The translations under genes and the position numbers were made by a program. 64,000 bases of DNA from Marsupella aquatica (lineage: Eukaryota; Plantae; Marchantiophyta): contig OZ316899.1 in assembly GCA_973895155.1 (NCBI GenBank), positions 6,513,241-6,577,240 on the forward strand, read 5' to 3'. Of this stretch, positions 2,634 to 33,857 are shown piece by piece (positions within the stretch are counted from its first letter, which is position 1; each line of letters opens with the position of its first letter). The notes below the pieces were generated by a model. It saw only the letters and a program-made list of their open reading frames with translations. It was not told the DNA's origin and did not search any database.

Positions 2634-5164
2634 GTGACTATGGAACCCGAGCCGAGGCCGAAAGTAAGGACGCCAAGGGAGGGAGCACGATTAGGGTTAG
2701 GGTGCGCTAAGTACCGGCGGCTATGGGTAACCAACGGGAAGGAAGACCAGCCAGGGGGGGTAAAGACCGATTGCAAGGAATGGTGGCTCATTTGCAAGCA
2801 CGAGCCAAGCGGACGACTACGGGAGGCCAACTACTGTTCGCTGCTCAGGCAAGCACTCGGGGTGGAAGCAGATACCGACAATCAACTCAAGAAGGGTATG
2901 AGCGACGTCAATCAAGCTGCTCATTTTTGGGGATGCCTGTTAGAACGGGCAATTGAGTACATTGGGACCTACGAGGACAAAAAATTGGAGAGAGCAGCTC
3001 AAGAACGGCAGGAGCTCGCTCGGCTGTGGGATCTGCAGAAGTTTGCCTTCTTAGGAGGAGAACTCATTACGGCTGAATTCTTGTGGACGCCTATTGCCGA
3101 CAAACTCGACGATCTTCTGTTTTGTGAGAACAGAATAGTCGGCATCCGGGAGGCCATCAACCGCTGCAACAACATACACTGGGAGTTGAAGGGTAGCACG
3201 GAGGGGTGGACGAAGGCAACCGTGCTAGGAGAAACATCCACGGCAGCCGCTATGAAGAGGAAAGGGAACAACAACGAAGAAGCCACCCTTGCAAAAAGAA
3301 CAAGGTCGGCGGCACCCAGGAAACCAACAGAGCAGGGAAGCAGGAGGCAGGCGGAAGCCAAAGAGGAGGAGGTCAACCCCATCAATGCCGTTCCAACAAG
3401 AGATGACACCTGGAAAGGCTGGGCGGCGACCCTCCCCAAGGAGGTGCAATTACACTTTGCACGAGAAGAGGATGCATGCTTTACGGCTATGCAGACTCGG
3501 AAATACCAGGGCTTCATGGCCGGATCCGGCTTGGAAGCCTTCGTAAAGTTACCATGGTTGAAGCCGAAGGTGTCGGATTCAAACTTACTAGAATTCATGG
3601 GATCATGGGAGCCAGAGACCAATTCCACAAGGGTGTATGGGAAGGATTTCTATCTCACTCCCCGGGTGATTGCCGAAGTGTTTGGCTTGCCGATGGGCAA
3701 TAAGACCAAAGTAAATACCAGGAAGACCTTGCTAGACAAGGAGTTCTGGTCGTTTCTAGGGCCATCAACAAAGAATGGTTTCTTCCGAAACACCTGCACA
3801 AACCCGCACATAGGAGAAATGATCGATTTCTTGCGGGTGACCATGCATTGCAACTTGTCAAGGGCAGAGATCGGCAAGGCACAGGTCTATTTGGCGGAGA
3901 GGCCAAACCCAAGCCGGGACTACAACGGGTACCTCCTCACCCAACTAAAGAAGATCTTGAAGGAGGAACAGCTGGTGATCGGCATGGGAAGCGTGTCCCG
4001 ACTTGGCTATCATATGCCGCTGTTGTGCCGGTATGCCCAAAGTCAAATATTTGCCGTGGTACTTCCCCTACAGGCAAGAGCACCAGAGGAGGTTCCGGAA
4101 CCAAGTCCGGCAACAGAGAAACCAACCCAGCCCAATGTCCTACAATCGAGCGGGTGTTTAGGCCGAGGAAGGAGGACTTGCCGATGCAGCAACCAGGCAT
4201 GCAGAATCTGCTGAAATTGCTGGAGAAGGAAAGGAGAACGGCAACGGCAATGGGACCGGTACATAATACTGCTCCCAAAATTGGCCTTAGCCAACTTACC
4301 AGGGAAAACCCCTTTACCGGGGTCAAGGAGAGAAGGAGGCCAGAACACAAGCCGGAAGTCCAAATGTATGTAGGAGCTTCAAGTCCCGAAGCCAAGGAAA
4401 AGTAGCCCAAAGCTCCTGGTTGCAACAGGGAGAAGAAGAGATCAACGTGGAAGTCGGAGGAACCAGGACCCATGATCTGTGAGGCCGTGTTCACGGCAAG
4501 ACCAGGACAGTAGCGGGGGAAGCCGGTAGTCCAAGCCAAGGAGGAGGCGGTAGAAGGCTACGACAATGATGACTTCGGCTATGGGTCGGACCATCATGTT
4601 CCAGGAATAAGAACCTGTGGCAGGTTCATCCCCATGCTTCCAAGAGTAGTTTGAGGGGACCCGACCCAGCAGAGCAGCCCCGAGTCTCCCCCACCAGATG
4701 TTGCTCCCCCAAGCTTTGACGACATAAAATAGATGGCACAGGAATTTCAGGAACGACTCAGGGAGGAAGAAGAGGACCCTAAACCCTAAACCCTGGCTAG
4801 GGAGAAAGATTTAACAGGAGGAGAATGGCCAGAGGACATCAGGTAGCTTGCAGAAAAACAAAGCAGCCCTCCAGCCACGATAGAAGAAATCCGCAAGGCG
4901 GCTTGGGAACAAAGGCCGCGGTGGATGATGCCGATGACTTCTACTCACCCCGCCTATGCTAAAGAACGAGCCATGGAGTATGGGGAGATGTGTGGGGAAC
5001 TTGCGCTCAACATCTTTGGGGAGGAGTTGGAGCAGGGACCCTTTTTTTAGAGGGAAATGTTGGAGAAGCGCCGATTAGAAGAAGCGGTGGCTTTGGAGAG
5101 AAGCAAGAAGGACGAGGTCATCCGTCGGCTTAGGGCAAGGGAAGCCGAGGTAGAAGACCTGAAG
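2634..5164 (+). pseudogene. Extra sense ORF downstream of pol (env-like / plant transposon protein type), frameshifted after ~4140, coiled-coil tail
   Basis: 526-aa ORF with LLEF...RVYGKDFYLTPRVIAEVFGLP, resembling Athila-type 3' ORFs; continues in ORFs 3848-4405 and 5057- until cut by the CACTA terminus. Confidence 0.6.
4367..5053 (+). repeat. Direct repeat, copy 2
   Basis: near-identical to 1-692. Confidence 0.97.
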
Positions 5165-5660
5165 CACTACAACATATGTGACACTTTTGCGAAGGTATTT
5201 TTGTCGACGCTCTTGTATTTCCGATGGGCGGCGCTTGGCATAATTTGTGAATCAACCCGCATCGCAATTTGCGATTCTATCCCTATCGCAAAGATAATAC
5301 TTGAAGCGCATTATATCGCTAATATGTTGCGAAGTAAATGATTATGCAAGTTTTACCGAAATGCGCCGAATGGAAAGGTGCCTTCTGAAGACGCCAAAAT
5401 CGCTCGCCGACTCCAAAACTAACTGATGTAAATATTTGCGAAGAAGGTTGGATTGAAATGTTTTTGCGATAGTAGTTGTTTGACAAGTTTAAGAATGTCA
5501 AAGGATGGAAGATTTGCGAAACGGTGAGAATATGGAATTTGTGATTGATTTTGCATCACAAGGTTGCAAATAGTATAGTATGGAAATATTGAGAAACGAG
5601 AAGCTTCATATAAATTGCGAGTCCGGTGAGATTTTGTTAGCTTCGCAAATTGTTCGCAAA
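5165..5660. repeat. CACTA-1 terminus and subterminal repeat field (TTGCGA/TCGCAA)
   Basis: CACTA followed by many short motif copies in both orientations. Confidence 0.85.
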
Positions 5661-5900: not shown

Positions 5901-6128
5901 TAAAGTTATATTGAACAACAGAGGTTAGATAGAAAGTTGCATGTAAAATTCACAAGTGATCACAATAATAAAACAATACAATACATATGTCATGAGTATG
6001 ACTCATTCAAAAATGAATGGCAAATATAAATATAGACAATACTTTTTTTTATATCACCAAACATGAACAAATCAAATATAACATGAACAAATGTCTAGGC
6101 TGGACCCAAGTGCATATAAATATGTCCC

Positions 6129-9100
6129 TCACACTTGGTCCTCATCGGCCTCAAGGTCATCTAGGTCTGATACAATAACATCTGGTTTCTCGGAAACAAT
6201 GGAACAAGAACGTGGCACATAGGTGATGACAATTGACCACTCGGTGTCTAAGGGGTATGGAATGTAGAAAACATTGCTCCAAGTGTGATGGGAAAGCAAA
6301 TGGTTATGATGTTTGCCAATGAGATGCTTGAACACTAGTGGCACTTGTCTTCAACCGTGTAAACCCACTCTCATCTTGAAGTACAGTGCAATTTTGACCA
6401 ACAAGGTTCACTTTGAACCACTTGCAGTTGAAGACATATTAGTCAAACTTTGAATGGTTGTCATATGATACCACCAAGATCTCCTCTATCTTCCCATAGT
6501 GTGGCACAACATCTCTAACAATGTTCCTGTCATGGCGGCTGCTTCTGGAGTCTTGAGAAAATTCCCCTTGAACTCCACAATCAAAAGTACGACCCCTCTT
6601 CTCATCAAGGGAAGAAACCCTGAAATTAACAAAACCCACAAATTTTTATTACACAAAAGATACCATTAATGTAATAATCATCAAAATATGATACCCATCC
6701 CTAAATAGCCAAAACCCACATGGCCTATGGCATAAATATAGAAGCCAACATTATAGTTATGGATGTCATTAATGATAATAGAAAGTTTTTAAACAATAGT
6801 AATAACTAATCAAAATAAGGTCTACATGAATTAATAGAGGAAGAAAGATTAGGTACTAGTGGACCTGAAGTGTCTCCCTTGTGTCCACATAGCTGTCTTG
6901 GATGTCACCACTCTCAAAGGGTCATGAACAATGGTCTGAACGTCATCTGTGATGGTAGGAAAGTGGGACACATCTCCTCCTTGTGTCACCATGTCATCCA
7001 ACTCAAGCAACTTTTGCTTCATATACTCATGCATCTTAGGAAAAATTCTTGCTCTTTGACTTGTTCTCTTGGCATTCTCATAAAACTCTGTTCATTTCTC
7101 CATGATATTACTATTACTCAACATAAATGTTGTCAACTGTGACCACTCTGTTGATGTCAACATGCGTGTTTTTGTGGCACCTGTTAAACGGTCCTCCTCC
7201 TCTTCTTTTTCCTCCATTCAAGTACGTGGACAAGTAGGATCAATGGTGGCCAAGATGTTACTACAATAAAACATACTCTCTGTTGCCAAGTATCCTGTAG
7301 CTATGCTTTCCTCCACCCGTGCACGGTTACGTACATAAGCCTTCAACACCGCCATGTAACGCTCAAGCCAATACATCCATCTACAATGCACTGGACCAAC
7401 AATGGCAACCTCCCGCACAAGATGCACAAGTAAATGAACCTGACAATCAAAGAAGGAAGGAGGAAGGGCTTTCTCCAACTTGCATACCACCTCAGCTGCC
7501 AATACCTCCATCCTAGGGATCTCTTCTACGTATATCTCCTTTGAGCATATCCATCTCAACAAACGACCCAATGACCAGATGGCATCTTGCACTTCTTCAC
7601 TCCCTATACCTATAATTGCCACCGGTAATATATGTTGCAATAGGCGATGATAGTCATGTGTCTTCAGATATCGTGGCCACTTGTGATTGTCCTCCATCCC
7701 AAAAGCTTTCCGAAGGTTGGCACCATAGCCTGTAGGAAACCGCATCTCTCCTATACGGTTCCAAAATTCACGTCTTTGGCCAACACTCAACACCCAAGGA
7801 GCAGAAGGACGATTCTCCACACCTATGATAGGATCAGTTGTCACCCCAACATCTGGATGCATTTCCATCTCCTCGCATGCCTCCCTAAAATTAGTGTCCT
7901 TCTCCCCATAAAAATGCTTTATCAAAGCCTTCCCCACATTTCCCTCTATGTGCATGGGGTCTAAGAGATGACGGATCTTCAACTCAGACCAATAGGGCAA
8001 AGTGGCTAGTATACTCCACCTGGTCAAACCTGTCCTATCAAAGGTGAAGGAATCATTTGGGTCTACCACCCTATCAGCTAGTGGCTTCCAATTTGCAAAA
8101 CTTATTGCATCAGGAATTTCACGCTCATCACCAAATGGCATGTCAAAGGAGGAGAATAGAAGTGGGTCAAACCTCATCTCATGTCCCATGGGAAGAAACT
8201 TTGTATGCCCAATATAAACAATCTTTCTAATCCATGAACAATATGTGGCCATGTCCTCTAAGCTTGGGCCACAAGTAGAGCAAGCTTTGTACCCCTGAGT
8301 TTGCAATCCAGAGACAAAACCACACCCTGCTTACATAGAAGAAATCAAACCATGCAAACTTTATGTTAGGGTTGTCACATGAGAAACAACAATAGGAACT
8401 ACACATTATCAAAGGGTTGCAAATGGCATGGAAGTCATCTTACCAGGAGAGTCATGCATTGTCCAACAAATGATCCCTCTCAATTGAAAGACACGTGGAA
8501 AACCTCCTGTAATTTTCCTGCCATCATATGCCCACACTCCATCCCATAATTTTTGAAGTTCTCCAACCAATAGTGCCAAGTAAGTGTCAAAGTTCTTCAC
8601 CTTTTTTGGACATGGGATAATCAAAGACAATAAAAGGAACCCCTTCTTCATGGATAGCCATGGTGGGAGGTTATAATTCATGACAACCACAGGCCAAACT
8701 GATGTAGGTTGCCCCTTTCCTCCAAGTGAATGAGGGCTAACTCCATCAGATGCCAATCCTAGCCTCACATGGCGAGGATCATGTGCAAAGTCTGGCCATG
8801 TTGCCTCAATATGTTTGTGAGCAAGGGAGTCAACTGGCAACCGCATGACACCAGACTCTGATCGATGAGTCTTATGCCATACCATCAACTCTGCCAAGTC
8901 AGAACACCAATACATGTGCAACAACCGAGGAATGATGGGAAACCAACAAACAGCCTTCCTTGGCACCTTCTTTGTTAGCATGTTGGGGTCATAGCGAGGC
9001 TCATCACATGTTGTACATTGTGTCATTGGCCCCATGAAATAACATGCAATCATTCACACATGCATGAACAATATGATATTCCATGCCAATAGATGAGAGA

Positions 9101-9605
9101 ACACTCTTTGCCTCCTTCCAAGTTGTTGGCAACACATTCTCAGTGGGTAACATAAGGTCATGGCAAAGTGCAAACATATCAGATAACAAGGCATTGCTTG
9201 CCTTGTGTTTGGCCTGTAAGTTCATCAATCCCAAGATGGCTGAAAGACGACTCAAACGAGCACCCTCATAGGTGTTTGGGCATGTTCCTCTGCTTCTTCC
9301 CATTGGCGTTGTCCCTCAGGGGTATTTTTTGGGCGTGGATCATTGGGAGGCACCTGCCCTTCATTGGGAAGGTCATCATCGGGGTTGTCGGCACCAAACC
9401 AATCAACCATAAAGTCATCCATGGCTCTATCCTGGTCATCAGTTACTTGTTCATCCGTCCCAGGTACCTCTTCATCAGGGTTACTGCTTCCACTAGCACT
9501 TGATGAGGAGCGTGACTCTAATCCATGTCCTTCTTCTGGCATACCCATTTCTCGATATGTTGCTCTCAATCTCCGTGGTAACATATTTGGAGAGGGTCGC
9601 ACATT
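6129..9605 (-). pseudogene. CACTA Tnp2/TnpD-type transposase (Transposase_21, DUF4218, DUF4216 regions), multi-exon, frameshifted
   Basis: HACVNDC, VRLGLASDG, WPVVVMNYNLPPW, HLLDPMHIEGNV, LKTHDYH, FFDCQVHLLVHL, RWMYWLERYM; GT-AG intron 8443-8327. Confidence 0.95.
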
Positions 9606-9781
9606 CTAAAAACAAAGCAAGCAATTGAAAGTTATACTGCAAAGAGAACACACACAAAAATGGGCTAGGGGTGTGCAAAAATGAAATAATATTGGTTGTG
9701 GTGCAAATACAAAACATGGCCAAAGGCCATATGTAGTGTCATTTGATATGCAACATACCACCTATGACCCTTAACTTAACC

Positions 9782-10597
9782 CTAATCCCACTCATAGTGA
9801 GTAAATAACTCATCCCCTGAGTTAATGGTCCTCATCGCTACAACTAGGCAATGGTCATGATGATATGTCTAGCCATAAGGTGCTGGCGGAGGACCCTCAA
9901 TGAAAACCCACTCACAATTTTGCCTACGCTTAGGGCGAGTCCCCACAGTACTTTTTATGAAACCAGCAATATTCCCAGTCCGTATGGGGTCCCCATCTAT
10001 GACACGCTGCTCACTATACCTTCTAGTGTTTCCATCAGAGGTATCCATGTCCAATGCATAAGTCTTCCACTCAGGGTGTTGTGCAAGGATCATGTTCCAA
10101 TGTCTTCTCTTGTAGATGGGTCCACCATAAGGAAACAAAGTAGGCCCCTCTCGGCCGCGTCCACCTCTACCACTCTCGGCGTCCACAATGATGTCCTCAC
10201 AGGCAAAAACTCCATAGCCATGTCTATCCCCAAGTGTGGAAGGTTTGATAACCCAACGTCTACCCCAAACCTCTACCTCCTCACCATAGGAAAGCTGTTG
10301 TGGCAAACCAAGAGTCTCAAAATCCCAGTCCTTGATGATAGGGACACATCTGCTAGTGAACTCACAATCACCCCACCTACCCATAACCACTGCCTTGTAC
10401 AAATCAGTATCCCCTCGGGCCCGCCTCTTGGAACGCTTTCTCCCTCTTGGGACAATAGCCTCAACCCCAACTTCCCTAGGACTGGTGGGCCTTGCCGCTA
10501 GACCCAAGGCTTGTGAGAATGCATTGCCTATAGCATCTAGAACACCTTGTGATGGGACATAGGGTGCTTGTGCCGCAGGTCTAGGCCTATTGGATAC
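9782..10597 (-). pseudogene. SET-domain exon (lysine methyltransferase-like) inside CACTA-1; one premature TAG at 9869-9871
   Basis: IKPSTLGDRHGYGVFACEDI, FPYGG, IDG..GNIAGFIKS, NCEW, then in frame past the stop DHCLVVAMRTINSGDELFTHYEWD*; AG acceptor at 10599-10598. Confidence 0.85.
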
Positions 10598-10700
10598 CTA
10601 TTCCACCAAAACCAAAACAAACAAAAGTAGGTGTGAAATTAAAAACCTTCAACCATTGAGTAATGGGAATAGGGTAGGAAAACTAAGGCATAACACTTAC

Positions 10701-10934
10701 CATATGAGATGAAGAAGCCCCTGCCATATTACGTCCACAATGCCCATATCTCTCAATATGTTGGGCACATATGTAAGATTTTTGGGAAACCTGACCCACA
10801 CATCTGGAACATTCACAAAGTTGACGCGGTGGACCACAAGGAGGAGGTGCGGTCGTGTGATGTTGAGGTGGAGGTGGTGTATCTTCATCAGAGGACGACG
10901 AGTCTGTGGTGGAGATTTCAGAAGATGAAGACAT
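10701..10934 (-). CDS. First coding exon: Ser/acidic and poly-Pro stretch plus transposase-associated Zn motif
   Basis: CECSRC...CAQHIERYG; ends ATG|GTAAGT (phase-0 donor). Confidence 0.75.
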
Positions 10935-12300
10935 ATCCCCTGTAACAAGATATAATTAAAATGGGCATGTTATGACCAAAACATACCACAAAATGATATA
11001 AATCAAAGTTCCCAAATAATGATGACAAGAAACCCAAACCAAAATGACCATAGCAATAAAAAAAGGTACCTTTATGAGACCCGGGCTCAGCAGTGCCAAT
11101 AGGTCTTGTGGCTCTAAGATAATTAATGAACCCAATCTGAAAGTATGAGGGAAAAGCTGCAAGCATTCCATGTATATGTAAGCACAATAATCTGGACAAG
11201 ACAAGAACAAAAAACCCTATATACTGTCCCCTTTATACATAGTGGCAACCAAAAGTGTTAAGTACATGAAATGAACACTTGAGCCGGTCATGCAATGTTT
11301 ACCTTTCAGATGCCTGGGCTCTCACAATGCATATGCATTAGTATCAAATCATCAAAAAGTGCCGCACCCTGCAAGCTATCATATATTCCCCTCCTTTGTT
11401 AGCAAAACCCATGCCAATCCCTTTTTGATTCATAAACCCAATGAACCTCTCTTAAACCCAAAAGGCTGCAATATAAATCTCATGAAACCTTGCTTTGTCT
11501 TATCCAAACCTTCAACCCCAAACCGCATCCTACCTATTAAACCTAAATCTGACTTACACATAAAACCAAACATTTCTTCAACCCTAGAGACCTTTCTATT
11601 TAAAAACCCCAAACCCTAAAACCCTAAACCCAAACCTTACTTATTTCTTGTAAACCAAATCCCGCACCTTTATTATTTCTTCTAAACTAATGTAAACCCA
11701 AACCTTAGCCTAAACCAACACCATACATAACCCATTAACCTGAAATCTGCCTAACCCTTCAAACCCACCTTCAAGTATGATTGAGTTGAAACCCTGAAAC
11801 CCTAAACCCTAACACCCAAAACATGGCCAAAAAGCATTCCAAATATGAGTATAGAGGGGTCCATGGCCAAAAAGCATTCCAAATATGAGTATAGAGGAGT
11901 CCACTTTACCTTTGAAAAAAACCCTTTCAAATGAAACCAACATTCCCCCCAAGACAAGTTGCCAATGTCTTGCGAAGCCACTTCCTTCGCAAATACCATC
12001 ACAAATTAGAATTGAGTTTTGCAAAGCGTATGCTTTCGCACGACCTTCAGAAAAACAGAGCCCAAGAGCATTTCTGCGAGAGAGCAAAGGTGTTGCAAAA
12101 CCTTTCACGTCGCAATGGTTTCGCAAAATTGAGAAACTACATGCGAAACAAGAAGGATCGCAAATTGCGAAACAGGTTGCTTCGCAAGTCTTTCCCGCTT
12201 GTACTTTAGCACTCGGCCGCGGCGTACTCAGCGGCATTTGACAAATTTCAAGCGTAGGGAGGGAGAAGGGAGCTCGCGCGCGCTCGGAGGTGGCTTAGCT

Positions 12301-14169
12301 ATGGATTCCAGTGGAGCAAATGGAGGTGATGGGGCAGGGGTGAGTGATAGTGGCAATGGGAATGAAGGCAATGGGGAGCAGGAGAGGAATCGATGGACCA
12401 ATTTGATGGCTAAGCACCTCAATGCAGCACAGTTGAGTCGCTTAGATTTGACTACACCAGCAGGGATTGCTTCTTTTAGTGCAATCCTAGGGCAAGCCTT
12501 GCAAACGGGAGTAGCTGCAGGGAACATTGCAAGGGAGGAGGAGCAAAGGAGTGCAGCTCAACAGAAGGCAAGAGAGAAGAAGCGTAAGAAGGAGAAGAGG
12601 GCCAAGGCAGGAGTAGTCTCACCTGCTGCCCTAGAAAAGAAGAGGAGAGAGGAAAGAGATGAGATAAGAGCACAGCGGGAGGAGCAGCGAAAGAAGGAGG
12701 AAGAGAGGAAGAAGCTGCCTATGATTGCCTTGATCGAAGGCATTCCTACTAAACTGGCCTACACCGGGGCAAAGAGCACTATCAGGCTTATGGTGCGCTC
12801 CAATTTTGCACGAGGAGTTGAGTGGGGGAAACTCAGCAAGGCAGACCAGAGGAAAGTAATGAGTCAAATTAAAGATTCATTTCGAAATGGAGCAGAGATT
12901 GATGAACAGTGGCTTGCAGATAGAATTTCCAATTCAATGTCTCAAGCACGGTACCATGATAGGAAGAAGGTAAGGGCCTACCTGGCAAACTTGGAGGAGT
13001 ACAGAAACGTGAGGAGGCCACTGCAATTCACTGAGGACGTGTGGAATGCCTTTTACAAAGTGGAGGTGCAGATGAGAGCTGCCAGGAACCTTCTCTTCTG
13101 GAAGGAGATGGAAGCCAAGGCACAGAAGGCCGGGAAGTCCAACCGAGAGCTCAAGGGAATGGCTGAGAAGGTGTCTCACATGCAGCACATTGTGGATGAA
13201 GTGGGGGCACCACCTCAAAAATTCATCCTTGCAGCTGAGCGAGTCAGCAAACGGCCCAAGACCACGCACAAGATGGGCCAAGGTGGACTTCCCGGCCTCA
13301 AAGCACACTTTGTGAGTGGGCCCTCTCCTCCCCTGCTTCTGTTTCCTTGCTTTCAATTGCTATCCAACCTGCAATGCCCCCTACATACCTCTTCTTTCTT
13401 TCTTACGGCCTGCCTTGTACTTTAGGTCACCCTGACACATTGCGTGCCTTAAAGATTTCTCGGAATTAAAAAAAACAGAGTTTGCGAAGCTTTTGCAATG
13501 CGGGTTGCTTCACAAATGTTTTGCAAAGTCTATTATGGCATTTTTTAAAGTTATAGATGCAAAGCTATTGCAAACTAACCCGCTTCGCAAACTACTTCGC
13601 AAACAGCCAATTTATTTGAATTTGCGAAGCGGGGAGTTTCGCAAGTGTATATTATATTTAAAAAATATCGCTAAGGGTTATTGAGCCCAGTTTTGTGTTA
13701 GGGAGCACCCTATTAGCACCTCCATGCATTTTTCTTGGGTTTATGGCATATTAACCCCAATCTATTTTGGTTTTGGAATGTTTGGTTGTGGTAGTATAAG
13801 AGGTACCACAGGAAGATAACAGCAAAAGAGATGGAGATAGGAGCTGCGCATGGAGCCAAACATCTCTTTGACTTGGTTGACGCAGAGTTGGCGACTGTAA
13901 GTGCATGTATCCCCTTCAGTTTTTCCCACCCAATCCACTTATCTTTTCATTCCGTAAACCTAAACCAATTTGGCGTTGTGCTGTGCAAACAGGATGATGA
14001 GGATGCCAGTGATACCAGCAGCACTGATGAGAACAATGAGGGGACCACGACAAAGGGGCCCAAGGTAGGAGGGAGTAGTGGATCTGGACCAGTAGGAGGA
14101 GTTTCCCAGCAGGAGGGGGAGGAAGAGGATGAGGACAAGGACGAGGAGGAACCAGATGTGGAGGAGTAG
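12301..14169 (+). CDS. CACTA-1 second gene (TnpA / Transposase_24-like), divergently oriented, spliced
   Basis: Long open exon with RPLQFTEDVW and TTHKMGQGG; donors GTGAGT ~13312 and GTAAGT ~13896; homologous to 31920-32851. Confidence 0.65.
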
Positions 14170-14770
14170 CCAGCACCACCTCCTGTGCCACGTTCGGATT
14201 GTCGCAAGAGGGACAGGGGGAAGAGGTCGGCGACAAGGAGTAGGAGGACCCCATTCTAGAGCTTGGTGGTCTAGTGCCCATGGGATGCCCATTTACTTAG
14301 TGTAGTATATAGTTTTGATGTGGGTAGTCTTATAGGGACCTAGCTTGTCATATGACACCCATCTAGGGTTTAGGGTTTAGGAAACCCTAATTTCTGTGTA
14401 CCTATCAATTTTCTATAAAGCAATTTTGATTTAGACCTCATTCTCCGTGTTGGACAACAAGACCCCAACCATAATTCAAAACTCTAAATCTAAATCCTAG
14501 CCTCAAGACAGCTTGCGAAACCTATGCGAACAACCCAAATCGCATATTTACCATACTGAAGGTATCGCAAACATTATGCAAACCACATAAGTTCACACAA
14601 ATGCGAAGCGATCTTCATGGCATAACTACCATTCATTGAATATCGCAAACATATTACCAACCTTGTGGAATCGCAAATATTGAACTCCCTCAACTCCAGA
14701 AGACTATCCTCCCTATGATATCCTAGTCTGTGATTCTCCAGAACAAGGTTTCGAAAGGGTTGATACAGCT

Positions 14771-22284: not shown

Positions 22285-25200
22285 CTATCGGCATCTGCAT
22301 CTCTGAACAAATGCCTCTACCCTTGTCACAGGAATGAAGTCCCGACTATCATGAACTACAGGCACTTGGTCTGAACGCCGACGATCAAAGGCACTATGAG
22401 AGTGTAAATGAAACTCAAGGTTTGATCCTTCCATCCAATGTTGCCTGGCCTGTTTATGACACACTACATGCCAACCTGGGGAGTCTTCCACATCCAAGAA
22501 GAAAGCTTGCTCCACTTGACTGGGAAACACAAATGGCTCAGACCATTCGGGCAATTTCCCTCTGAAATTGGCCAACAAGAAACCATCGTTGTCTCTCTTT
22601 ATGGTAGCCCTATTACCAAGCCAATCTTGCCACACCCATGAACCTTTCATAAGAATCACAGGACTGGACACCGACCCATAGTCCAGAGCCCATATGTCAA
22701 CTAATTCTCCCACATATCCCATCTCCGTCCAGGCCCTGTCGTGATTGTGGTTCTATTGCTCAAATACAGTGATGAGCCCATAGTCATTTGTCACCCTGTA
22801 GGCACTATCACCATCCTTCACTCAAAAGTGATTCCCATATGCTCTCATCCATTTGTAAGTCTTCACTTTCAAGCTAGGGGCATTAGACAGTAGGTAAAAG
22901 TCTGCATCCATGTCTGGGTGGGTCTCGTGATGCTCTCTAATTGCCACTCTGATCCACTCCATGAAACCTGGAAAAGTTGTTCCTGTAGTGGGATGGGCCG
23001 CCTTCAATGACTCATACTCCCTGAACAAACAACCACACAGCATTAGCTTGGCTAATATGAACAGGCTGAAGGAGAATACACAACATTTAAGCTCATGAAC
23101 TGGATTATAGCACATGTATGCACTCACTGTATCCAGGGTTCCATCACCACAGTGTTGTGCAATACAAAGTCATGTGCCAAGTCTCTCATAGATATAGTTA
23201 GGTTCTTTGTGGTTGCAGCCCCTTCCAGTACTTCACCTATCACTCCTTCCTCCTCATCAGAATTCCACACCCTGGTCTTCACATGCTCATATTGTGCTAT
23301 GTATTCGGTCAGAAATCCCAGAGTCTCGTCCTTGATGTAACCTTTAGCCATGCTTGCTTTAGGTTTGTAATATGTTCTCACGTGACCTTTGAGCAGCTTC
23401 ATGTACCGTTCCAAAGGGTACAACCAACGAACACTCACAGGCCCAAATTGGTGTAGCTCTTTCACAACATGGACAAGTAGGTGAGTCATGACATCAAAAA
23501 TGCTGGAGGAAAATAAATCTCCAGGTCACACAGCACCTGAGCGACATCTTCTGTCAGTTGTGGGAAGTGGGTTTCATCCCAAAATCACCCTATTCATTAA
23601 AAGTGTATTTTATTTTGTTCACTTTTAGGCCTCGAAATGTACACTTTTGGTCTCTAAATGTACACTTTTAAACACCAAAAGGTATATTATAGTACAATAT
23701 TCTACACCTAAATAGTCAATTGTAAACTTGAGGGAGAAAAAATGATCTTTACTAGAAGGAGTCTCATCCTAGTTAATTTATAAAAGATGAACATGATGGT
23801 ATGTCTGATGGCCATCACTTTTATTTCTTGCCCAAATGTACACTTTTTGAAAGCCAAATGTTCACAAATTGAATAATAATTCACTTTTAATGAATAGATT
23901 GATCAAACCCTTCATACAAATATGACAAAACACATCACTGAGTCGCATGATCACATAATTACGAACACGCTTCTGCAACAGGCCCCTCGGGCATAAAGGC
24001 AACACCTATTGCATCAACATATGGTAGTCATGGCTTTTCATACTACCAAGCTTTCTAGTCATGATATGCTTCTTGAAAGCACTGCCATAGTTTGAAGGAA
24101 CCTTCAAAGAACTCAACCTCTGCACAAATAGTTTCCACTCTGTGTCTTTCAGAACATAGGGCGCTTGGTACTTCAAGAGCACATCAGCTCTGTGGGCATG
24201 TGGCCTCAACCAAAGATGGGGTTTCATTCCCCTCTGTTCAAGATCCAATCTCACAGGACCACAAGAATCTGAGTAGACTCTCACAAATATTCTTCTCAAT
24301 GTGCATAACATCAATGTTATGTTTGCTTGGCTCAAACTCCTGCACCGTTGCAATGCAAGAGCGTCAGCAAATGCCTCAAGTTTAGTCTCTCTCTTCGAAA
24401 TGAATGCACATGCTCTAAACCAAAACATGTATCCCAATTAGCATCAACTCCAAGAGGCTTACCCTCCAATACTTGAGCTCCAAGTCCAATATGCTATGTC
24501 TTTTTACACCATATTGCTTTATTGGATCACTCACTCCATCTTCCCTGCCCCCTCGTTTGATATAGTCATCCCTCAGTGCTCCCCACTGCTTGATCTCCTC
24601 TTTGGTCACTCGTGCCGGGGTCCACGTTGCTCAATCTCATTGCCAAAGTGTGCAATCAATGCCTATCTTTCTCTGTAAGGGTGATCTGCCTTCAGAAAAT
24701 GACAATGGCCCATGTATATGACTTTCTGCAGGGCTTTGGAGTACTCACTAGTGACATTGCGCCCACAGATAGTACAAGCACAATATCCTTTTGTTGTTTG
24801 GCCTGATATCATCCCATGGGCTGGGTAGTCAGCTATAGTTAGAATGACAATGGCTCTAAGGATGAATGGGTTTAACCTCCCAAGCCTATGTAGGACATCA
24901 TATGTGAGAACTCCTTCCTCCCAAAGCTTTCTCAATTCCTCCACTAGGGGAACCAGAAACACATCTATGTTGGCAGATACAGCACTGTCTGGCCCTGGTA
25001 TTAGTAGGACCATCAGAACAAAAAATTGTTTTGTAGTCATCCAAGGAGGAAGGTTATAATTCAAAATCGTTATAGGCCAGCACACAAATTTGTTGTTCTT
25101 ATCTCCAAATGGGTTTACCCCATCCAATGACAACCCAAGTCTGACATTCCTTGGCTCAGCAACAAATTTGGGATACATCTCATCTATGAGTTTCCACTGC

Positions 25201-26300
25201 CTTGAATTTGCTGCATGTCTTTGTAGCCCATCAACACTTTTCTTGTCAGTTGCCCAAGTCATCATCTCCGAGATGGCATGGCTTCTAAACATCCGCTGAA
25301 GTTTGGGAATGAGTGGAAAATGACAAAGTACCTTGGCGGGAACCATAGACTTTCCTGAGTTCCGATACCTGTGCTTCCCACACTTAGGGCATGTCAACAA
25401 TTCTGCATACTCCTTTCTGAAAAGAGCATGCCCATCAGGACAGGCATGGATGGAATCATAGTTTAATCCAAGATTAGATATGCATCTTTTTGCCTCGAAC
25501 ATGTTCTTGGGCAAAATATTACCATCTGGTAGCACAATTGTTCGCAAGAATGCCAACAACTCAGAAACTAAAACGTTGGGGACATTGTGGTTGCCGCAAA
25601 TGTTCAGACACATGATGACAAATCCCAGTTTAGAACATTTTCTACCAGGGTACAAAGGCTTCCTGCCTTCCTGTATTTGCAGGAGAGAGCCAAACATCCC
25701 ATCATGCCCAGGGGTTTCCTGCCCTATCTCAAACTCATCAAGAGGCTCTTCAACAAGGGGCACACTTGCATCTGCAACCGTATCCTCTTCGTTGTCCAAC
25801 CCATCGTGAAATGCATCCAAGTCTTGGAAGATGTCTCTCACCATCTCTTCCACATGAATTCCTTCGTCATGTGGTGTTGCCTGAGCACCATCCCGTTGGA
25901 GGGCTGACAACCCACAAAGACCAGCTACAACATTTTCAAATGCACCAGACAGAACCTCACTTGCAGCATTGGCAGCATCAAATTCTAACCTCCACTCCTC
26001 GTTGGAAGAATCTTCCTTTGCAAGAACCTTCCAAACTTGATGTCGTGGATCTCTTCCATGAACCGCAATATGCCGCCAAACCTCATTTAGACCCCTGGTA
26101 TGGGATCCTTGGTAGATTGCACAAGGACATCTCATCCTATTGGCTCCTGAAAGTCTGGTTCGTAACCTTTCACGCTGCCAAAGCTTATTATCATGGTGTG
26201 AAATCCTTGTGGGATGATGCAAAGGCAGTGCCTGTGCCCTGGGCTGGGTTTGGGGAGGGTGGTGACCAGGGTGCATTGTAACAGACTGGAAGCTCTGCAA
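22285..26300 (-). pseudogene. CACTA-2 Tnp2 transposase (Zn motif + Transposase_21 + DUF4218 + DUF4216), spliced, degenerate
   Basis: CPCAI...RHIAVHG, IHACPDG, RNVRLGLSLDG, NYNLPPW, ADYPA, MKSHDYH, THLLVH, RWLYPLERYMK, EPFVFPSQVEQAF. Confidence 0.95.
23584..23903. mobile_element. MITE-like insertion (~320 bp) in the CACTA-2 transposase
   Basis: Terminal inverted repeats atcaccctattcattaaaagtg / cacttttaatgaatagattgat; CAAA on both flanks; AT-rich; internal tgtacactttt repeats. Confidence 0.8.
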
Positions 26301-27564: not shown

Positions 27565-30500
27565 CTAATGTGTAATGCTATCACATTGTTTCCTATCCAC
27601 TGCCATGATATACAATCCAAGTTGCTTTGGTGGCAACCTAAATAGATCATGCAGATCAGAAACAAGGATTTGATGTGCTATTCGAATCTCCTCATACCGT
27701 CTACATGCTATGAACACATGATATTCATTCTCAATGCTGCCACTATCACAGAGTCTACACACCCTATCCTGCCTCCTAATTCCCTTCCATCTACCCTCCT
27801 CTATCTCCAAGTGATGTGAGCTGAGTCTATATCTAGCAATCACTTGTCTCAACCTCATAGAAATGGGAGCTCTAAGATACTCTTGTTCTTCATACAACAT
27901 CATGGGGTTTACATCCCTCATAAAATACTGTAATCTAGGGCTAGGATCACTCCAAAGTTTTCTAATAGCTTTATCACGCAAGAGTGACCAAAGCTTCTTT
28001 GGTTGAGTATGCCATTCATGCTCAGATAAGTCCCATGATTGGGCCCAGCTACATACATCAGCATACCAACCAAAAGCTCTAGATATGTGAAAGGCTTGCG
28101 TAGGTAGCCTAGAATCATTCAATGCCTCCACTCTCCTAGCATATTGAAGAGTGTGATAGAGAGCTTCAACCTCCAATGGTAGAAGACCTACCTCAGCCAA
28201 TAACAAGGGGTATGGGGTTTGGGTTTTCACTCCAAGCTCCATCTCCAAGAAAAGCTTTTGGATGGCCTCTACCTTTTTCCAACAAGATTGAGAAGTAGAA
28301 GGGCCCCATACTTGCACCCCATAAAGAATAACAGGCCTTACCAAGGAATTGAAGAGTTGTTTCTTCAACTTCCAAGCAGAAAGGCTTGCTCCCTTGCACT
28401 TCTGAACCATGCTGTAGAAGGCCTTGTAACCATGAGCCACCCTATGCGTCACACATGTAGCCCAACTCATGCTTCGAGAAAACTCCACCCCAAGATACTT
28501 GTAAGAGGTCACCATCTCCACCTTTTCACCTGCAAAATAGAGAGAAAGCTCTTGCTTTGTACCAAGTACAAGGCACTTGGTCTTCCTCATGTTGACCTGC
28601 ATGTCTGATTGTTTGCAAAAATGCTCTAGGGCTAGAAGATGTTGTTGCAAATCAGATTGGGAGTGAGCTAGAAGCACCACATCATCTGCAAATATAAGAA
28701 GTTGGATGGCCAGTGTTCCCAACTGAGAACCTACGCCTCCCATCTCCTCTAGCAAATCATGTAGTTGGTCAATGAAGATCCCAAAGAGCGTTGGAGATAG
28801 TGGGCAGCCTTGGATCACACCAAGTGTGCTAGGAACCTCCTCATAGCTACTACAAGAGAATCTAATCATTACCTTTTGATACAATTGTGCAATAGAGCCT
28901 ATTCTCATCTCAAGAGGAACTTCGAGACTAATCAACTGCTCCCAAAGCTTGTGTCTACAAACCCTATCAAATGCTTTGGAGAAGTCTACAAACAAGCAAA
29001 ATAGAGGTAGCTTGAGTCTTTTAGCCCTCTCCTCTAACACTCTAAGGCAAAGCATGTGATCTAGAGTACTAAAACCTGCCCTAAAACCAGCTTGTGATGA
29101 TGCTCTTTTCATGTGTTTTTCAACCCAAGAACTAAGTCTAGCTTCTAGTAGTCCTCCTAAAACTTTAGCAAAGATACTAGCTATCATGATAGTCCTATAG
29201 TTGCTCACCTCATTCTTAGAGCCTCCCTTGTGAATAGGTACCAATCTCCTTGTACTCCAATCTGGAGGTAAGCCACCTTGGACCACTTGATTCAAACATG
29301 CAGTGAGTGCTGATACCAAAAAAGATCCACCCCATTGTAGGAGCTCCACTATGAACCCTTGCAAATCTGCAGCCTTGCCCTTTTGCATTCTAGATAGTTG
29401 AGTTTGCACCTCTATATCTGAGAATTGAATAGCTTCCCCAATCTCCAAAGGCATGGAAGTAGCTTCGGGATAGAAGTAGAGAGACTTCACATAGCTTACC
29501 AATGTTTGTTGTTCCAAGCAAATATCTTCTTTTTTCACCTGAAATCTCTTCCAAAAGCCTTTAGGATTCTCTTGAAGTTCTTGGGAAAGCACTTGTTGAT
29601 GTTGCCTCATGAAGCATCTCTTCTTGTGCTTCACAAAGTTACTATACATTCTCAATGCAAGTAACTTTACATCTTCAGCTTGTGCCATGCCCCTCCTTCT
29701 AGCTTCTACACACTCTGCATCAAACCATGCTTTCATGGTTTGGTTTGTGGACAATGATCTTTTAGAGAATACAGTAGTAGCTGCTTTTGCTATCAGTTGT
29801 GATAGTTCCAACGCATTGGAATGTGTTGGTAGTAGGGCCTCAATCTCCCCTCTAAATACATCAGCCTTATCATGATCCATAAAGAGTTTAGAAATATGTC
29901 TTTTCCTTGTTATCCCCTCTCTAAAACTTGTGGCCAAATCTAGATGAAATAACAAGGGTAGATGTGAAAACTCTGGTTGTTGATCAAGTATTCTAAAATC
30001 AATCACTCTACTAGCTGAAGATGGTGATGCTAGGAGATAATCAATGGTGCTACATCCTTGGCTTGATCTAAATGTATAACTTGATGAATGAGGAAATCTT
30101 TCAAGCCCATTCAATATTCTCAGATTACAAGAAGCTCCTAATTGTAGAAAATGGGGTGTCATATCATTTACCCTAGTATTTATAGCTTTTCTCAACCAAG
30201 ATGAGTCTTCATTACATGATATCCAAGGCAATGCCCCCAAATCTCCACTATCAATGAATTGTTGGTGAGACACTCTAGCATTAAAGTCTCCCACTATCCA
30301 TGTCTCTCCTAGTACTGGTACATCATGTATAACTTGAATCAAGTTATGGAATGGATATTGTGCATTAGCAGTTCCCATCTTGTACACATTCATGCTAAGT
30401 GGGGCAAAATAGGTGGCAATTAGAAATGATGGAATACCTCTAGTATGTAGTCTCACCACCATGAATTGCTTGCTTGGATCTTCATGCTCAATAGATGTCA

Positions 30501-30738
30501 TGTGTTGAAGATGATTCTTGGTGTAGACTGCAATACCTCCGAACCCTCTTCCCCTTGTGGTGTTCTTTTTATTGAAGAGAGATCCAATGCAAGTAAAATC
30601 CTTGATGCTAGGTAGATCATTCTCCTCATACTGCCAAGTCTCCAGGAAGAGCAGGATGTCAGCATTCTCAAACAAGGGTTCTCCTCCTATTGCTGATTCT
30701 ATGGAAAGTCCTGAAATATTCCATGCCATGACTCTCAA
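27565..30738 (-). CDS. LINE-A ORF2: APE endonuclease + reverse transcriptase + C-terminal CCHC
   Basis: AWN, ETW, GDFNA, IDY, SHLPL (APE); QAGFR, FVDFSKAFD, QGCPLSP, FADD, YKYLG (RT); CRLC...ENEYH...C. Confidence 0.97.
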   Translation of the reverse strand: MRVMAWNISGLSIESAIGGEPLFENADILLFLETWQYEENDLPSIKDFTCIGSLFNKKNTTRGRGFGGIAVYTKNHLQHMTSIEHEDPSKQFMVVRLHTRGIPSFLIATYFAPLSMNVYKMGTANAQYPFHNLIQVIHDVPVLGETWIVGDFNARVSHQQFIDSGDLGALPWISCNEDSSWLRKAINTRVNDMTPHFLQLGASCNLRILNGLERFPHSSSYTFRSSQGCSTIDYLLASPSSASRVIDFRILDQQPEFSHLPLLFHLDLATSFREGITRKRHISKLFMDHDKADVFRGEIEALLPTHSNALELSQLIAKAATTVFSKRSLSTNQTMKAWFDAECVEARRRGMAQAEDVKLLALRMYSNFVKHKKRCFMRQHQQVLSQELQENPKGFWKRFQVKKEDICLEQQTLVSYVKSLYFYPEATSMPLEIGEAIQFSDIEVQTQLSRMQKGKAADLQGFIVELLQWGGSFLVSALTACLNQVVQGGLPPDWSTRRLVPIHKGGSKNEVSNYRTIMIASIFAKVLGGLLEARLSSWVEKHMKRASSQAGFRAGFSTLDHMLCLRVLEERAKRLKLPLFCLFVDFSKAFDRVCRHKLWEQLISLEVPLEMRIGSIAQLYQKVMIRFSCSSYEEVPSTLGVIQGCPLSPTLFGIFIDQLHDLLEEMGGVGSQLGTLAIQLLIFADDVVLLAHSQSDLQQHLLALEHFCKQSDMQVNMRKTKCLVLGTKQELSLYFAGEKVEMVTSYKYLGVEFSRSMSWATCVTHRVAHGYKAFYSMVQKCKGASLSAWKLKKQLFNSLVRPVILYGVQVWGPSTSQSCWKKVEAIQKLFLEMELGVKTQTPYPLLLAEVGLLPLEVEALYHTLQYARRVEALNDSRLPTQAFHISRAFGWYADVCSWAQSWDLSEHEWHTQPKKLWSLLRDKAIRKLWSDPSPRLQYFMRDVNPMMLYEEQEYLRAPISMRLRQVIARYRLSSHHLEIEEGRWKGIRRQDRVCRLCDSGSIENEYHVFIACRRYEEIRIAHQILVSDLHDLFRLPPKQLGLYIMAVDRKQCDSITH

Positions 30739-30750
30739 GGTCCCAACCCA

Positions 30751-31488
30751 TCATTTAGAGGCATCTCTCTTCCTTTGGGTCACAAAAGCTTGCCCATTGC
30801 GCAGATATGCTACCAATCCTTGATCCTTGGCTGCCCTCACCTTGTCAAGCTCAATCTTCCTTGCTTGCACTTGGGTGGGAGTCAGATCATCATCCAACCA
30901 AATCCTTTGACCCTTGAGCATGCTCCTATTAACCATCACTCTAACTTTCTCAGATTCCATGCCAAACTTGACCAAGATTGGATGTGGAAGATCACCCTTC
31001 TTTTGTCCAATCCTGTATGTCTGCAAAATGGTAGGTTCATGCACTTTCAAGTGAGATTGGAAGAAGGAAGTGACTACCTCTTTGGTGTTCTCCTTTTCCA
31101 CCTCCACCACCCTTGATATCTTGCAATTATTCACTCTTGCATGTTGGTTCTTCTGTTCCTCCTCCAGTAATCTTCTCTCCTCTTCCTTGGTTTGGATAAA
31201 CTCCATGTGTGATTGTTTGGCTGCTTCAACATATGTCTTTAGCTTCTCCTCCATCAAGTCCACGGTGTTGTTCTCTTTTAACCTCTCACTCATCCCAACT
31301 GTATGTTCAGCAATCACCCTAGTGACCTTGATAGAGCCACCCAACTCAATCCTCAACTCATGGATCTCTTTCCTTTGCTCCTCCACTACTCTCACAAGAG
31401 TAGCCAATTGGGCTTTTTGGTCAGCCATCTCCTTTGTAAGCCCTTTCAACAAGGACATCACATCCTCCAAACCCACTTGGTCCCCCAT
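30751..31488 (-). CDS. LINE-A ORF1 (coiled coil + RRM-like)
   Basis: 245 aa; NNCKIS..E, YRIG..K..PHPILVKF, IWLDDDLT; homologous to 55422-56195. Confidence 0.9.
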   Translation of the reverse strand: MGDQVGLEDVMSLLKGLTKEMADQKAQLATLVRVVEEQRKEIHELRIELGGSIKVTRVIAEHTVGMSERLKENNTVDLMEEKLKTYVEAAKQSHMEFIQTKEEERRLLEEEQKNQHARVNNCKISRVVEVEKENTKEVVTSFFQSHLKVHEPTILQTYRIGQKKGDLPHPILVKFGMESEKVRVMVNRSMLKGQRIWLDDDLTPTQVQARKIELDKVRAAKDQGLVAYLRNGQAFVTQRKRDASK

Positions 31489-31919: not shown

Positions 31920-32851
31920 ATGGGCCTCTTTTCTACTTGCTTCAATGCTGCTATGATGTTTGCAGGAGGTTTTTGAAGTCTTGCTGCTTGAGCTGCCCAC
32001 TGTCGAAGGTTCAGTTGGAGGGGGGCCATGTCAATATCCTCCCCGGCAGCTCGCTTTTCTTCTGCAATCCTGATTTTGTTGTCCCAATGTCGTCTCTTTA
32101 GCCAGGCTCGAACAGAGAGCTCCTCCTCAAGCCAAGCTGTCCATGCATCCTGGGGAATCACATCTCAACACTGGTGCTCCCTGCCCACCTCTGCATCTAT
32201 TGGCAAATCAGTAAGGTAATCCCTCATCGTCTCCCGCACATGATTCCTTGCATCTAAAACAGAGGCTGAAATTTGACTGTTTAGAAATCTGTCTTCAAGG
32301 TGGGCTCCGTTCTTGAATCTTTCTTTGATCTGCTCCCAAACCTTGGTCCTCTCCTCCTCTCTTTTCTTACCCCAGTAGTCTAGTGGCCCAAAATTTGCCC
32401 TCACAACCTGCAAGAATTGGCTGCGGAACAAATTGTAGCTCCTAGGCATTGGAGCCCCACCTGAATTGATAGCCAACTCAGGTTGCAGAGCCCTCTCAGC
32501 CTCCCTTCGCCTTTGCTCCTCAACTCGCAGCCTCTTTGCCTCCCTAGCTTCTCTTCGAAGCTTTTTCTCCCTTTTCCGAGGAGAGAGAGCCTCCTCACCA
32601 TTTGCCCTAGCCCTCTCCGCCTCCTTTCTCTTCTTCCTCGCCTCTTTCTCTGCTGCGAGGCCTGCTGCAGCAGCCTTCTCTGCCTCACCTTTTGAGGCAT
32701 CAAGCAAAACCTGAAGCACCGGGACTACTCTTGCTGCATCCTCCACTGAAAGCCCTGCCTTGGCCACAAACAACTCCCTCATTATCTCCTCATATGGCCG
32801 GGATGGCCCAGCCCCGTCTCCCCCATCACCCGATCCTCCTTCCCCCACCAT
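31920..32851 (-). pseudogene. CACTA-3 divergent TnpA-like gene, 3'-truncated
   Basis: VVRANFG...WGK...QIKERFKNGA aligns with MVRSNFA...WGK...QIKDSFRNGA of 12301-13425; internal TGA at 32165. Confidence 0.7.
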
Positions 32852-33857
32852 CTCTCCTCCTTCCCGAGCTCCTCCCCTCTCGGCCTTAGAAAATTTTCTG
32901 AAATGACTGATGTGCAAAGGAAGCCCCGTAGTGTACGCCTTCGCAAGCGCATCGGGATTTACGGATTTCAAATTTTGAATCAAGTCCGATTGTTTCTGCT
33001 TCGGAACATCCATAGCGTATAGTATTGAATGTCAAATCGGACCTTCCGATGCGTGTTGCATCGGACCTCTCCTCCGGCTTGTTATTCCTCGCTTTTATGA
33101 AGTGTGATACGTTGGAAACGGTATCGGACCCCTCGTGTAATGTTATCAGATAGGGGGTTAAGTAGGGCTTATGTAGGGGTCATGTAGGTGTATGTGGGAA
33201 GGACCGGTTGTATTAACATTTAATCGTCATGTATGTTTGAATCAGGTTTTATAGGGCCATACATGTAGACACATACCGTAGGAGGTTGGCAACGGTGTCG
33301 TGGATGTGATATATCGACCTTCTTGCAATTTTGGGGTTTGTACCTGAATCCAGATTTTTTTGTGATATACTTTGGTTATCCATGTTCAATTTGCTAATAT
33401 TTGTCTTTGGGTTTGATGTGCAGTACCTTGGTTTTGAAGGGGTGGTTAGGTTTTTGTAGGGTGTTAGCTAGGTAGGTTATTTTGCAATGCACTATGCACA
33501 GTGTGAGACCGCGCATCCAAAAGGTATGATGCCCCATCCATTTATTCCTTGATCCTTTAGGCTATTTCAGGTTTGGCATGCAAGTTTTTATCATATGTGC
33601 TTGAGCTTGTTTTCGGCAATTGTAGATCATGCATGCTCATTATGAAAATGTCCACCTTGTAGAGATTTTGGATATCCCCACACTTTGTGTGTAGAGAATA
33701 CGGCCTAGTAGGCACGGCAGAGCGCGGGTATCATTGAGGTATAGCAAGTGTTGTATATATGTCTCTCATTCAATTGTTTTTCTAGACATAAATATTTGTC
33801 TTGCTGGTTTTTTTCTTTCATCCAACATATTGTCATGGTTGTATGATATATATGCAG

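Follow-up and report, generated by a model that had tools for sequence, protein, structure and literature searches.

In maize En/Spm, with TnpA and TnpD, and in Arabidopsis EN/SPM3 and EN/SPM7, one CACTA gene gives both the transposase and an accessory protein by alternative splicing (PMC13547354). Genes for SET-domain proteins have also been described on DNA transposons, in HarbingerS, oomycete MuDR elements, Helitrons and the red-algal Plavaka (EnSpm) PAG2 (PMC12730594; bioRxiv 10.1101/2025.02.11.637652). Here we describe a bryophyte CACTA family that was found in a 64,000-nucleotide stretch of the genome of the liverwort Marsupella aquatica (contig OZ316899.1, positions 6,513,241 to 6,577,240). 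This whole stretch is called the window, and all coordinates are positions within it unless a relative is named. The window contains long interspersed nuclear elements (LINEs), pieces of copia and gypsy elements, and three CACTA copies, CACTA-1, CACTA-2 and CACTA-3. Judged from their sequences, CACTA-1 and CACTA-3 are decayed copies from two subfamilies of one high-copy bryophyte CACTA/EnSpm family, in which an exon encoding a SET domain appears to share the first coding exon of the transposase. Transposon-borne SET genes and En/Spm alternative splicing are already known, and a SET exon that shares exon 1 of the transposase would be a new variant. In the literature, we found no paper on a land-plant CACTA element with a SET domain, and none in which a SET exon makes use of the first coding exon of a transposase.

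The bryophyte family is like En/Spm in belonging to the same superfamily, with Tnp2, a CACTA end and subterminal repeats, and in having one transcription unit that would give two products. The first-pass annotation of this DNA had drawn a parallel with TnpA/TnpD splicing, and this is a reasonable one. However, the accessory protein of En/Spm is of the TnpA type, whereas that of the bryophyte family is a SET-domain protein, and no Transposase_24 or TnpA-like domain was found in the family. It also differs from En/Spm in a coding zinc-motif exon that, by the model, is shared by both products, and in a separate, divergent third open reading frame (ORF). The splicing is documented for En/Spm and EN/SPM3/7, whereas we infer it for the bryophyte family. 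The HarbingerS, MuDR, Helitron and Plavaka elements are similar in being DNA transposons with a SET gene of their own, which presumably acts on chromatin marks. Published descriptions treat their SETs as accessory genes in their own right, and PAG2 carries a DNA methylase domain in addition. The bryophyte SET, by contrast, is a single exon nested in intron 1 of the transposase, which would take its start codon from transposase exon 1, and its hosts are land plants. SETMAR is a primate host gene in which SET and an immobile, domesticated Hsmar1 transposase form one fusion polypeptide. Both systems have SET and a transposase at one locus, but the bryophyte family is a multi-copy transposon with a conserved stop between SET and transposase, and these two would have at most an N-terminal exon in common. 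The likeness to SETMAR that had been proposed for the window was thus not borne out, since the conserved stop parts SET from the transposase and there is no good conserved in-phase donor inside SET.

A probably shared first coding exon and its two candidate acceptors

We propose that intact members of the family are one transcription unit that opens with non-coding leader exons. These would be followed by a coding first exon of 65–78 codons, with an acidic/Ser-rich stretch and a CxCxxC-x13-H zinc motif, whose single phase-0 donor would be able to join either of two phase-0 acceptors that read TAG. Joining to the near acceptor, about 90–135 nucleotides (nt) away, would add the SET exon, of 260–280 codons and with its own stop, and give a Zn-SET protein of about 340–350 amino acids. 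Joining to the far acceptor, about 1.06–1.19 kb away and 134–176 nt beyond the SET stop, would add the multi-exon Tnp2/DDE transposase and give a Zn-transposase. If both junctions are used in vivo, as we infer, the choice of splice site would set the ratio of transposase to an accessory protein with the same N-terminal module. From the sequence comparisons that follow, we give such a switch between SET and transposase on a shared exon a probability of about 0.65; for the Zn-SET product, taken by itself, we are highly confident.

CACTA-1 lies on the minus strand. Its shared first coding exon (10701–10934) has 78 codons, from the ATG at 10934 to the phase-0 donor ATG/GTAAGT (a slash marks the splice boundary), and the peptide consists of the acidic/Ser-rich stretch followed by CxCxxC-x13-H. 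A 103-nt intron with GT and AG ends (10598–10700) separates it from the SET exon (9782–10597), which opens AG/GTA at 10597 and runs to a stop at the position typical of the family, the TAG at 9784–9782. A T-rich, non-conserved spacer follows (9606–9781), which is a candidate for a 3′ untranslated region (UTR), for the remainder of a long intron, or for both. The first transposase exon or exons (8412–9605) open TTTAG/AAT and run into Tnp2 (PF02992, 126.7 bits, 8412–9053), and a later transposase exon (7218–8306) carries the end of Tnp2 and DUF4218 (113.8 bits). CACTA-3, on the plus strand, has the same order. Its shared first coding exon (33858–34091), again of 78 codons, contains the motif CWCVRC...H and ends at the donor CAG/GTAATA. 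The SET exon (34217–35151; PF00856, 27.1 bits) opens AATAG/GTG, ends with the TGA at 35149–35151 and is frameshifted. The first transposase exon (35286–36329) opens GATAG/AAT, with Tnp2 from about residue 255 (76.3 bits, 35286–36326), and the DUF4218 exon (99.7 bits) lies together with the probable right terminus (CACTACAAT, minus strand, 38475–38483) in 36958–38483. The first-pass annotation had placed the donor of CACTA-1 at 10701 and its acceptors at 10597 and 9605, and those of CACTA-3 at 34091, 34217 (SET) and 35286 (Tnp2), all in phase 0. Reading of the sequence confirmed every one of these positions and phases.

Both of these window copies are dead. The SET frame of CACTA-1 was thought to stop at 9782; this is indeed where the family stop lies, but the frame of this copy is already cut by a premature in-frame TAG at 9871–9869, 29 codons ahead of it, where the list of open reading frames also ends. 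The transposase frame of CACTA-1 is broken at about 9255–9267, with a 4-nt deletion near 9267. Genomic contigs from four public runs were aligned to window positions 6001–11600, with continuous genomic coverage. At 9871, nearly all other genomic copies show A>G on the plus strand, that is, a coding-strand C (Gln) in place of T, and some have 4 additional bases at 9267. The lesions of CACTA-1 are therefore private to that copy. In CACTA-3, the SET frameshift is near 34810–34849: the ORF stops at 34847–34849, and the similarity to SET goes on in another frame to 35148, as two high-scoring segment pairs.

Intact relatives of the element are present in the liverwort Calypogeia fissa, in many species of the moss Sphagnum and in moss-associated metagenomes. 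With the SET piece as the query, 44 protein clusters were obtained, all of them from Sphagnum, Calypogeia fissa or moss-associated metagenomes. The copies compared, all intact or nearly so, were from Calypogeia (L001), from Sphagnum (L002 and L007) and from Logan, ENA and Joint Genome Institute (JGI) contigs with bryophyte hosts (L003, L005, L035, L061, L064 and L067), and a further 53 metagenome loci were found with the exon-1 alignment. Nine diverged lineages and some 50 copies from Sphagnum show the same layout, a recurrence of sequence pattern far beyond chance. A phase-0 donor stands directly after exon 1 across the lineages (ATG/GTAAGT, GTG/GTAAGT, ACG/GTAAGT, CAG/GTACAT or ATG/GTGAGT). 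The intron between exon 1 and SET is 89–136 nt long in all lineages and ends TAG/G, the SET exon has 257–279 codons and its own stop, and a spacer of 134–221 nt after this stop leads to the TAG acceptor of the transposase frame, where the contig reaches it. All three sites, with their phases, are present in L001, L002, L061 and CACTA-3 of the window. In L001 the donor follows position 10216 and the acceptors precede 10330 and 11344; in L002 the corresponding positions are 10231, 10348 and 11296. L064 has kept both acceptors and lost one base at the donor. The contigs of L003, L005 and L067 end ahead of the transposase exon and give the donor and the SET acceptor only; L067 is a member of the CACTA-3 subfamily from another sample, with the same donor and SET acceptor. 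In the Sphagnum copies, GT was found at the donor in 44 of 44, AG at the SET acceptor in 21 of 25 and AG at the transposase acceptor in 9 of 9. Of the four SET acceptors without AG, three have AA and the fourth reflects a boundary set wrongly in L035. When the window copy is compared as DNA with Sphagnum and L064, the similarity is lost shortly after the SET stop, with none between 9777 and 9609, and picks up again at 9608, 3 nt ahead of the acceptor. The near and far acceptors do not differ consistently in pyrimidine content. The donor, the acceptors and phase 0 that were predicted from the window are shared by the lineages examined.

When exon 1 was used as a profile in an exhaustive search, 23 proteins were recovered. 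In 20 diverse peptides of exon 1, with 26–69% identity, C40, C42, C45, G47 and G64 are invariant, and H59 is nearly always present. Each of 13 short ORFs that run past the end of exon 1 continues with Val, from the GTN of the donor, directly after ASSSxx, and six further members, read as DNA, have GT at the exon end. The ratio of nonsynonymous to synonymous divergence (dN/dS; pairwise Nei–Gojobori estimates here and below) is 0.16–0.49 for exon 1, which is thus under purifying selection; synonymous divergence over exon 1 and SET runs from 0.44 to saturation.

Can the SET and transposase exons be translated without exon 1? From their sequences, neither is able to start translation alone in every lineage. 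No start codon is conserved in the SET exon: depending on the lineage, the first Met comes at codon 72, 14, 113, 4, 36, 100 or 33. The conserved sequence of SET (PYVPSQ..) is already present from about codon 10 onwards, and the L001 exon has its first Met inside the SET domain. In the transposase exon, the preceding in-frame codon is the TAG of the acceptor in all six lineages checked, and a conserved peptide, N-x-R-P-S..LPRRLR..Y..MGMP, begins at the acceptor. In L061, 20 homologous codons (HFARPIFRALPKRARQNYTR) without a Met stand before MGMP, with a degree of conservation much like that of the remaining N-terminus; dN/dS for the transposase N-terminus is 0.29–0.64. Since these 20 conserved codons precede the first ATG, the L061 transposase exon needs an upstream coding exon. 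The donor of exon 1 is the only conserved good phase-0 donor upstream of the transposase exon.

CACTA-2 (24663–26300, minus strand) has one ORF without interruption, in which a degenerate Cys/His motif (residues 51–91) is followed by Tnp2 (residues 357–544) and SET is absent. Exon 1 and the transposase exon together are collinear with this ORF, with residue 110 of the transposase-exon query aligned to about residue 210. The first-pass annotation had taken the motif of CACTA-2 to be the same zinc motif in direct continuity with Tnp2. The motif, CPCAIY...H...H, is contiguous with Tnp2, but it resembles exon 1 only weakly, and BLASTP was not significant. With the CACTA-2 N-terminus as the query, no homologues were found. 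PF13963 (Transpos_assoc) was the top Pfam family for 4 of the 20 exon-1 relatives and for CACTA-2, with 14.7–15.2 bits against a cut-off of 27.7, and the match fell on profile positions 30–70 in three exon-1 relatives scanned singly and in CACTA-2. For exon 1 of CACTA-1, PF13963 was also the top family, below the threshold. The N-terminal PF13963 domain of plant Tnp2 transposases and exon 1 are alike in the CxCxxC...H spacing, although in the bryophyte CACTA family the motif has an exon of its own. Exon 1 is probably a diverged form of this transposase-associated N-terminal domain of Tnp2 transposases, a remote homology that is credible, not proven, from the profile matches.

The SET exon

The SET exon has 42 columns that are invariant across 11 sequences. 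Among seven lineages, dN/dS of SET is 0.17–0.35 for most pairs and 0.44 for the closest pair, with synonymous divergence (dS) from 0.45 to saturation; for CACTA-1 against the other lineages, it is 0.19–0.35. By these estimates, SET is under purifying selection, and because dN/dS is low, SET is a selected part of the element and not passive cargo. The dS between the SET exons of the window, Calypogeia (L001) and Sphagnum (L002) is about 0.7–0.9. Given the age of the moss and liverwort lineages, this value is low, and horizontal spread of the element between them is possible.

The assignment to SET rests on PF00856 (cut-off 22.4), which gave 27.1 bits for the CACTA-3 piece (34840–35148), 22.9 for the Sphagnum protein model P0004 and 21.7 for the Calypogeia model P0001, and on the ESM Atlas, in which all named neighbours are SET families, both by features and by structure. 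Minimal SETs from viruses and haptophytes are among these neighbours, as are ATXR5/6-like and SUVR-like proteins. A PDB sequence search with the SET profile and with the SET part of P0001 gave no match. The C-terminal (D/E)EL..Y segment has a weak match to SET8, and the family conserves GYG and (D/E)EL..HY. In an alignment made by eye, I-N-S-(T/S/C) stands at what we take to be the position of the canonical N-H-S/C cofactor motif. For this reason, it is uncertain whether SET is catalytic, and from the sequence it may instead act by binding or as a competitor, without catalysis. An AlphaFold model of SET, from the alignment of 11 sequences, had a mean predicted local distance difference test score (pLDDT) of 36.9, too poor to check the pocket.

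What could a SET protein do for the transposon? The shared zinc module would bring SET to the same DNA or the same partners as the transposase, and once there, SET would have chromatin or the transposase as its target, or would serve as a competitor. We tentatively suggest that SET might be tethered to the DNA of the element through the zinc/DNA-recognition exon of the transposase, where it might write or block a chromatin mark on the element's own copies and so resist silencing or limit itself, with the dose set by the choice of acceptor, in a system that has spread between mosses and liverworts. Such a course of events is possible, though doubtful as a whole. Transposons with their own chromatin modifiers are rare, and they bear on how mobile elements escape or tune silencing by the host. 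A SET protein made from the promoter and start exon of the transposase, with the presumptive targeting module in common, would be a simple design for self-directed chromatin control.

Transcripts, gene models and rival explanations

The annotated proteins reach as far as the Zn-SET product. Proteins of 343–351 amino acids, in which the exon-1 peptide is joined exactly to the SET exon, are annotated in Calypogeia fissa, in five Sphagnum species and in the JGI genome of S. fallax. These models include P0001 from Calypogeia and P0004 from Sphagnum jensenii, the latter in a cluster of 360 members with proteins of S. troendelagicum, S. balticum, S. compactum and JGI S. fallax (KAH8930834 and KAH8972646). 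The Zn-SET gene models are predictions and no proof of transcripts. Other matches in the protein searches are ORFs called on genomic DNA from internal Mets, or genome annotations. In two Sphagnum models, P0015 and P0102, a splice within SET leads into the N-terminus of the transposase; these chimeras have the look of gene-prediction errors on decayed copies. CACTA elements make up 6.8% of Sphagnum genomes (PMC9946827). The hundreds of bryophyte models named 'SET domain-containing protein' are therefore transposon genes and not host chromatin genes, and this origin matters for gene-family counts.

Several results weigh against the use of both acceptors. CACTA-1 and CACTA-3, the window copies with SET, are both dead. 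Five sequencing runs match the stretch, and none of them is on record as RNA. The four aligned runs are genomic, and the joints in their alignments (10941>11067, 11155>11300, 10566>10695 and 9634>9782) are diverged introns or spacer, not splices; they coincide with predicted introns and the spacer, since the copies can be aligned with one another over exons but not over introns. No cDNA-like contig was present among more than 60 related loci from Logan, ENA, JGI and metagenomes, all of which have kept the introns. No annotated protein that joins exon 1 cleanly to the transposase exon was found, and none of the 23 proteins from the exon-1 profile search has the length of a Zn-transposase. However, the JGI annotation pipeline for Sphagnum uses RNA-seq assemblies and discards models rich in transposable-element domains (PMC9946827), and because such models are discarded, the absence of transposase models says little.

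The 3′ end of a SET mRNA is also less clear than the term terminal exon implies. The spacer after the SET stop contains no AAUAAA-like hexamer in CACTA-1 or, overall, in five of six lineages, and there is no conserved poly(A) signal, which is a further point against the proposed switch. UGUA motifs are present in the spacer, and plant poly(A) signals are loose. An alternative to a terminal exon is a choice between 3′ splice sites with a shared 3′ end, in which case the SET mRNA would have a very long 3′ UTR.

The explanation that competes most directly with the shared-exon switch is that exon 1 serves only the Zn-SET mRNA, and that the transposase is made from a start of its own, either from a promoter in or after SET or from the first AUG on an unspliced or bicistronic RNA, so that the far acceptor is unused or incidental. 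A Met eight codons past the acceptor (MLPRRLR) is conserved in CACTA-1, Calypogeia and Sphagnum, and in L064 too, where it comes after an earlier Met at codon 2. As only 7 codons stand before this conserved Met in three lineages, an independent start of the transposase is possible there, which counts against the switch. No annotated or assembled sequence links exon 1 to the transposase exon, and none of the five matching runs is on record as RNA, two points that also count for an independent start. On the other hand, the 20 conserved codons ahead of MGMP in L061 include no Met, the conserved TAG acceptor is the exact point at which the ORF opens in six of six lineages, and the similarity between copies resumes there. 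Without exon 1, the transposase would also lose the N-terminal Cys/His module that CACTA-2 has in one ORF. We consider this explanation unlikely, although it deserves serious attention.

Capture of a host gene fragment in the manner of Pack-CACTA elements, or an artefact of gene prediction, would leave SET with no role for the element. CACTA elements are known for capturing gene fragments (references in PMC4158355), and SET is broken in both window copies. Against this, the stop in CACTA-1 is private to that copy, the dN/dS of 0.17–0.35 holds in seven lineages with dS up to saturation, the invariant columns are many, and two diverged subfamilies, as well as mosses and liverworts, have SET in the same position and with the same splice sites. 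Passive capture is largely refuted by the selection and the conserved placement, and we regard it as highly improbable. Scarcely any credence can be given to SET as an internal exon of a single Zn-SET-transposase fusion of the SETMAR kind. P0015 and P0102, which join part of SET to the transposase N-terminus, would fit such a fusion, but in most lineages the stop comes directly after ..HYEW(D/N/S), with 2–9 extra residues in L061, P0043 and P0020/P0025. Inside SET, the sole phase-0 GT common to all seven lineages is an ordinary Val codon in a poor donor context, and L005 and L061 lack the GTGAGT that P0015 uses. A one-ORF fusion is thus contradicted by the conserved SET stop and by the lack of a conserved usable internal donor.

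Leader exons, the divergent gene and the element ends

Two non-coding leader segments of CACTA-1 lie upstream of exon 1 on the minus strand. The outer one is a leader element or first non-coding exon of 40 nt (11303–11342; TAATGCATATGCATTGTGAG...GAAAG/GT), which is conserved in L064 (325–364), in L061 (283–320) and, in three copies, in L001 (8933–8975, 9375–9407 and 9786–9828). It is kept even in L061, the most diverged lineage, and its triplication in the Calypogeia copy was a further observation. Its role may be that of a control element, in the promoter or in the first exon. The second non-coding leader exon (11070–11156; CAG/CTTTTCCC...CATAAAG/GT) has homologues in L001, L003 and L064, and the genomic joints 11155>11300 and 10941>11067 coincide with the introns that flank it.

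A second, divergent ORF of CACTA-1 (12199–13425, plus strand) has homologues that stand head-to-head with exon 1. The corresponding ORF of CACTA-3 (32165–33013, minus strand) is homologous to it, with 37% identity (E 4e-17), and is 62% identical to that of L067. Other relatives are in L001 (6933–7835), L002 (5554–6480), L067 (3–938) and about 45 metagenome loci, so that the ORF is found in Calypogeia and Sphagnum and in both subfamilies. It encodes about 300–400 amino acids, with a Lys/Glu/Arg-rich coiled stretch and a conserved C-terminal part, and neither Pfam nor the PDB returned a match for it. This ORF is probably an additional gene of the transposon, with its transcription driven by a bidirectional promoter.

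The left terminus of CACTA-1, CACTACAAC at 5165, is accompanied by five TTGCGAAR subterminal repeats (5165–5648, plus strand). The right terminus of CACTA-1 and the partner ends of CACTACAAC and CACTACAAT were looked for and not found. TTGCGAAR occurs 21 times in the window, against 2.5 expected, with clusters at 5187–5648, 11970–12187 and 13482–13644, and the middle cluster sits between the two divergent genes. By analogy with Spm, these putative binding sites may double as promoter elements. Telomere-type (telobox-like) AGGGTTT/CCCTAAA repeats are also present between the divergent genes, at 11580–11830, in the flanks at 4778–4801 and 14358–14381, and in L002 at about 9740–9770. Between CACTA-2 and CACTA-3 lies a LINE (27565–31488, minus strand) with an intact-looking endonuclease/reverse transcriptase ORF of 1057 amino acids and an ORF1 of 245 amino acids, and it may be the cause of the lost 5′ end of CACTA-3.

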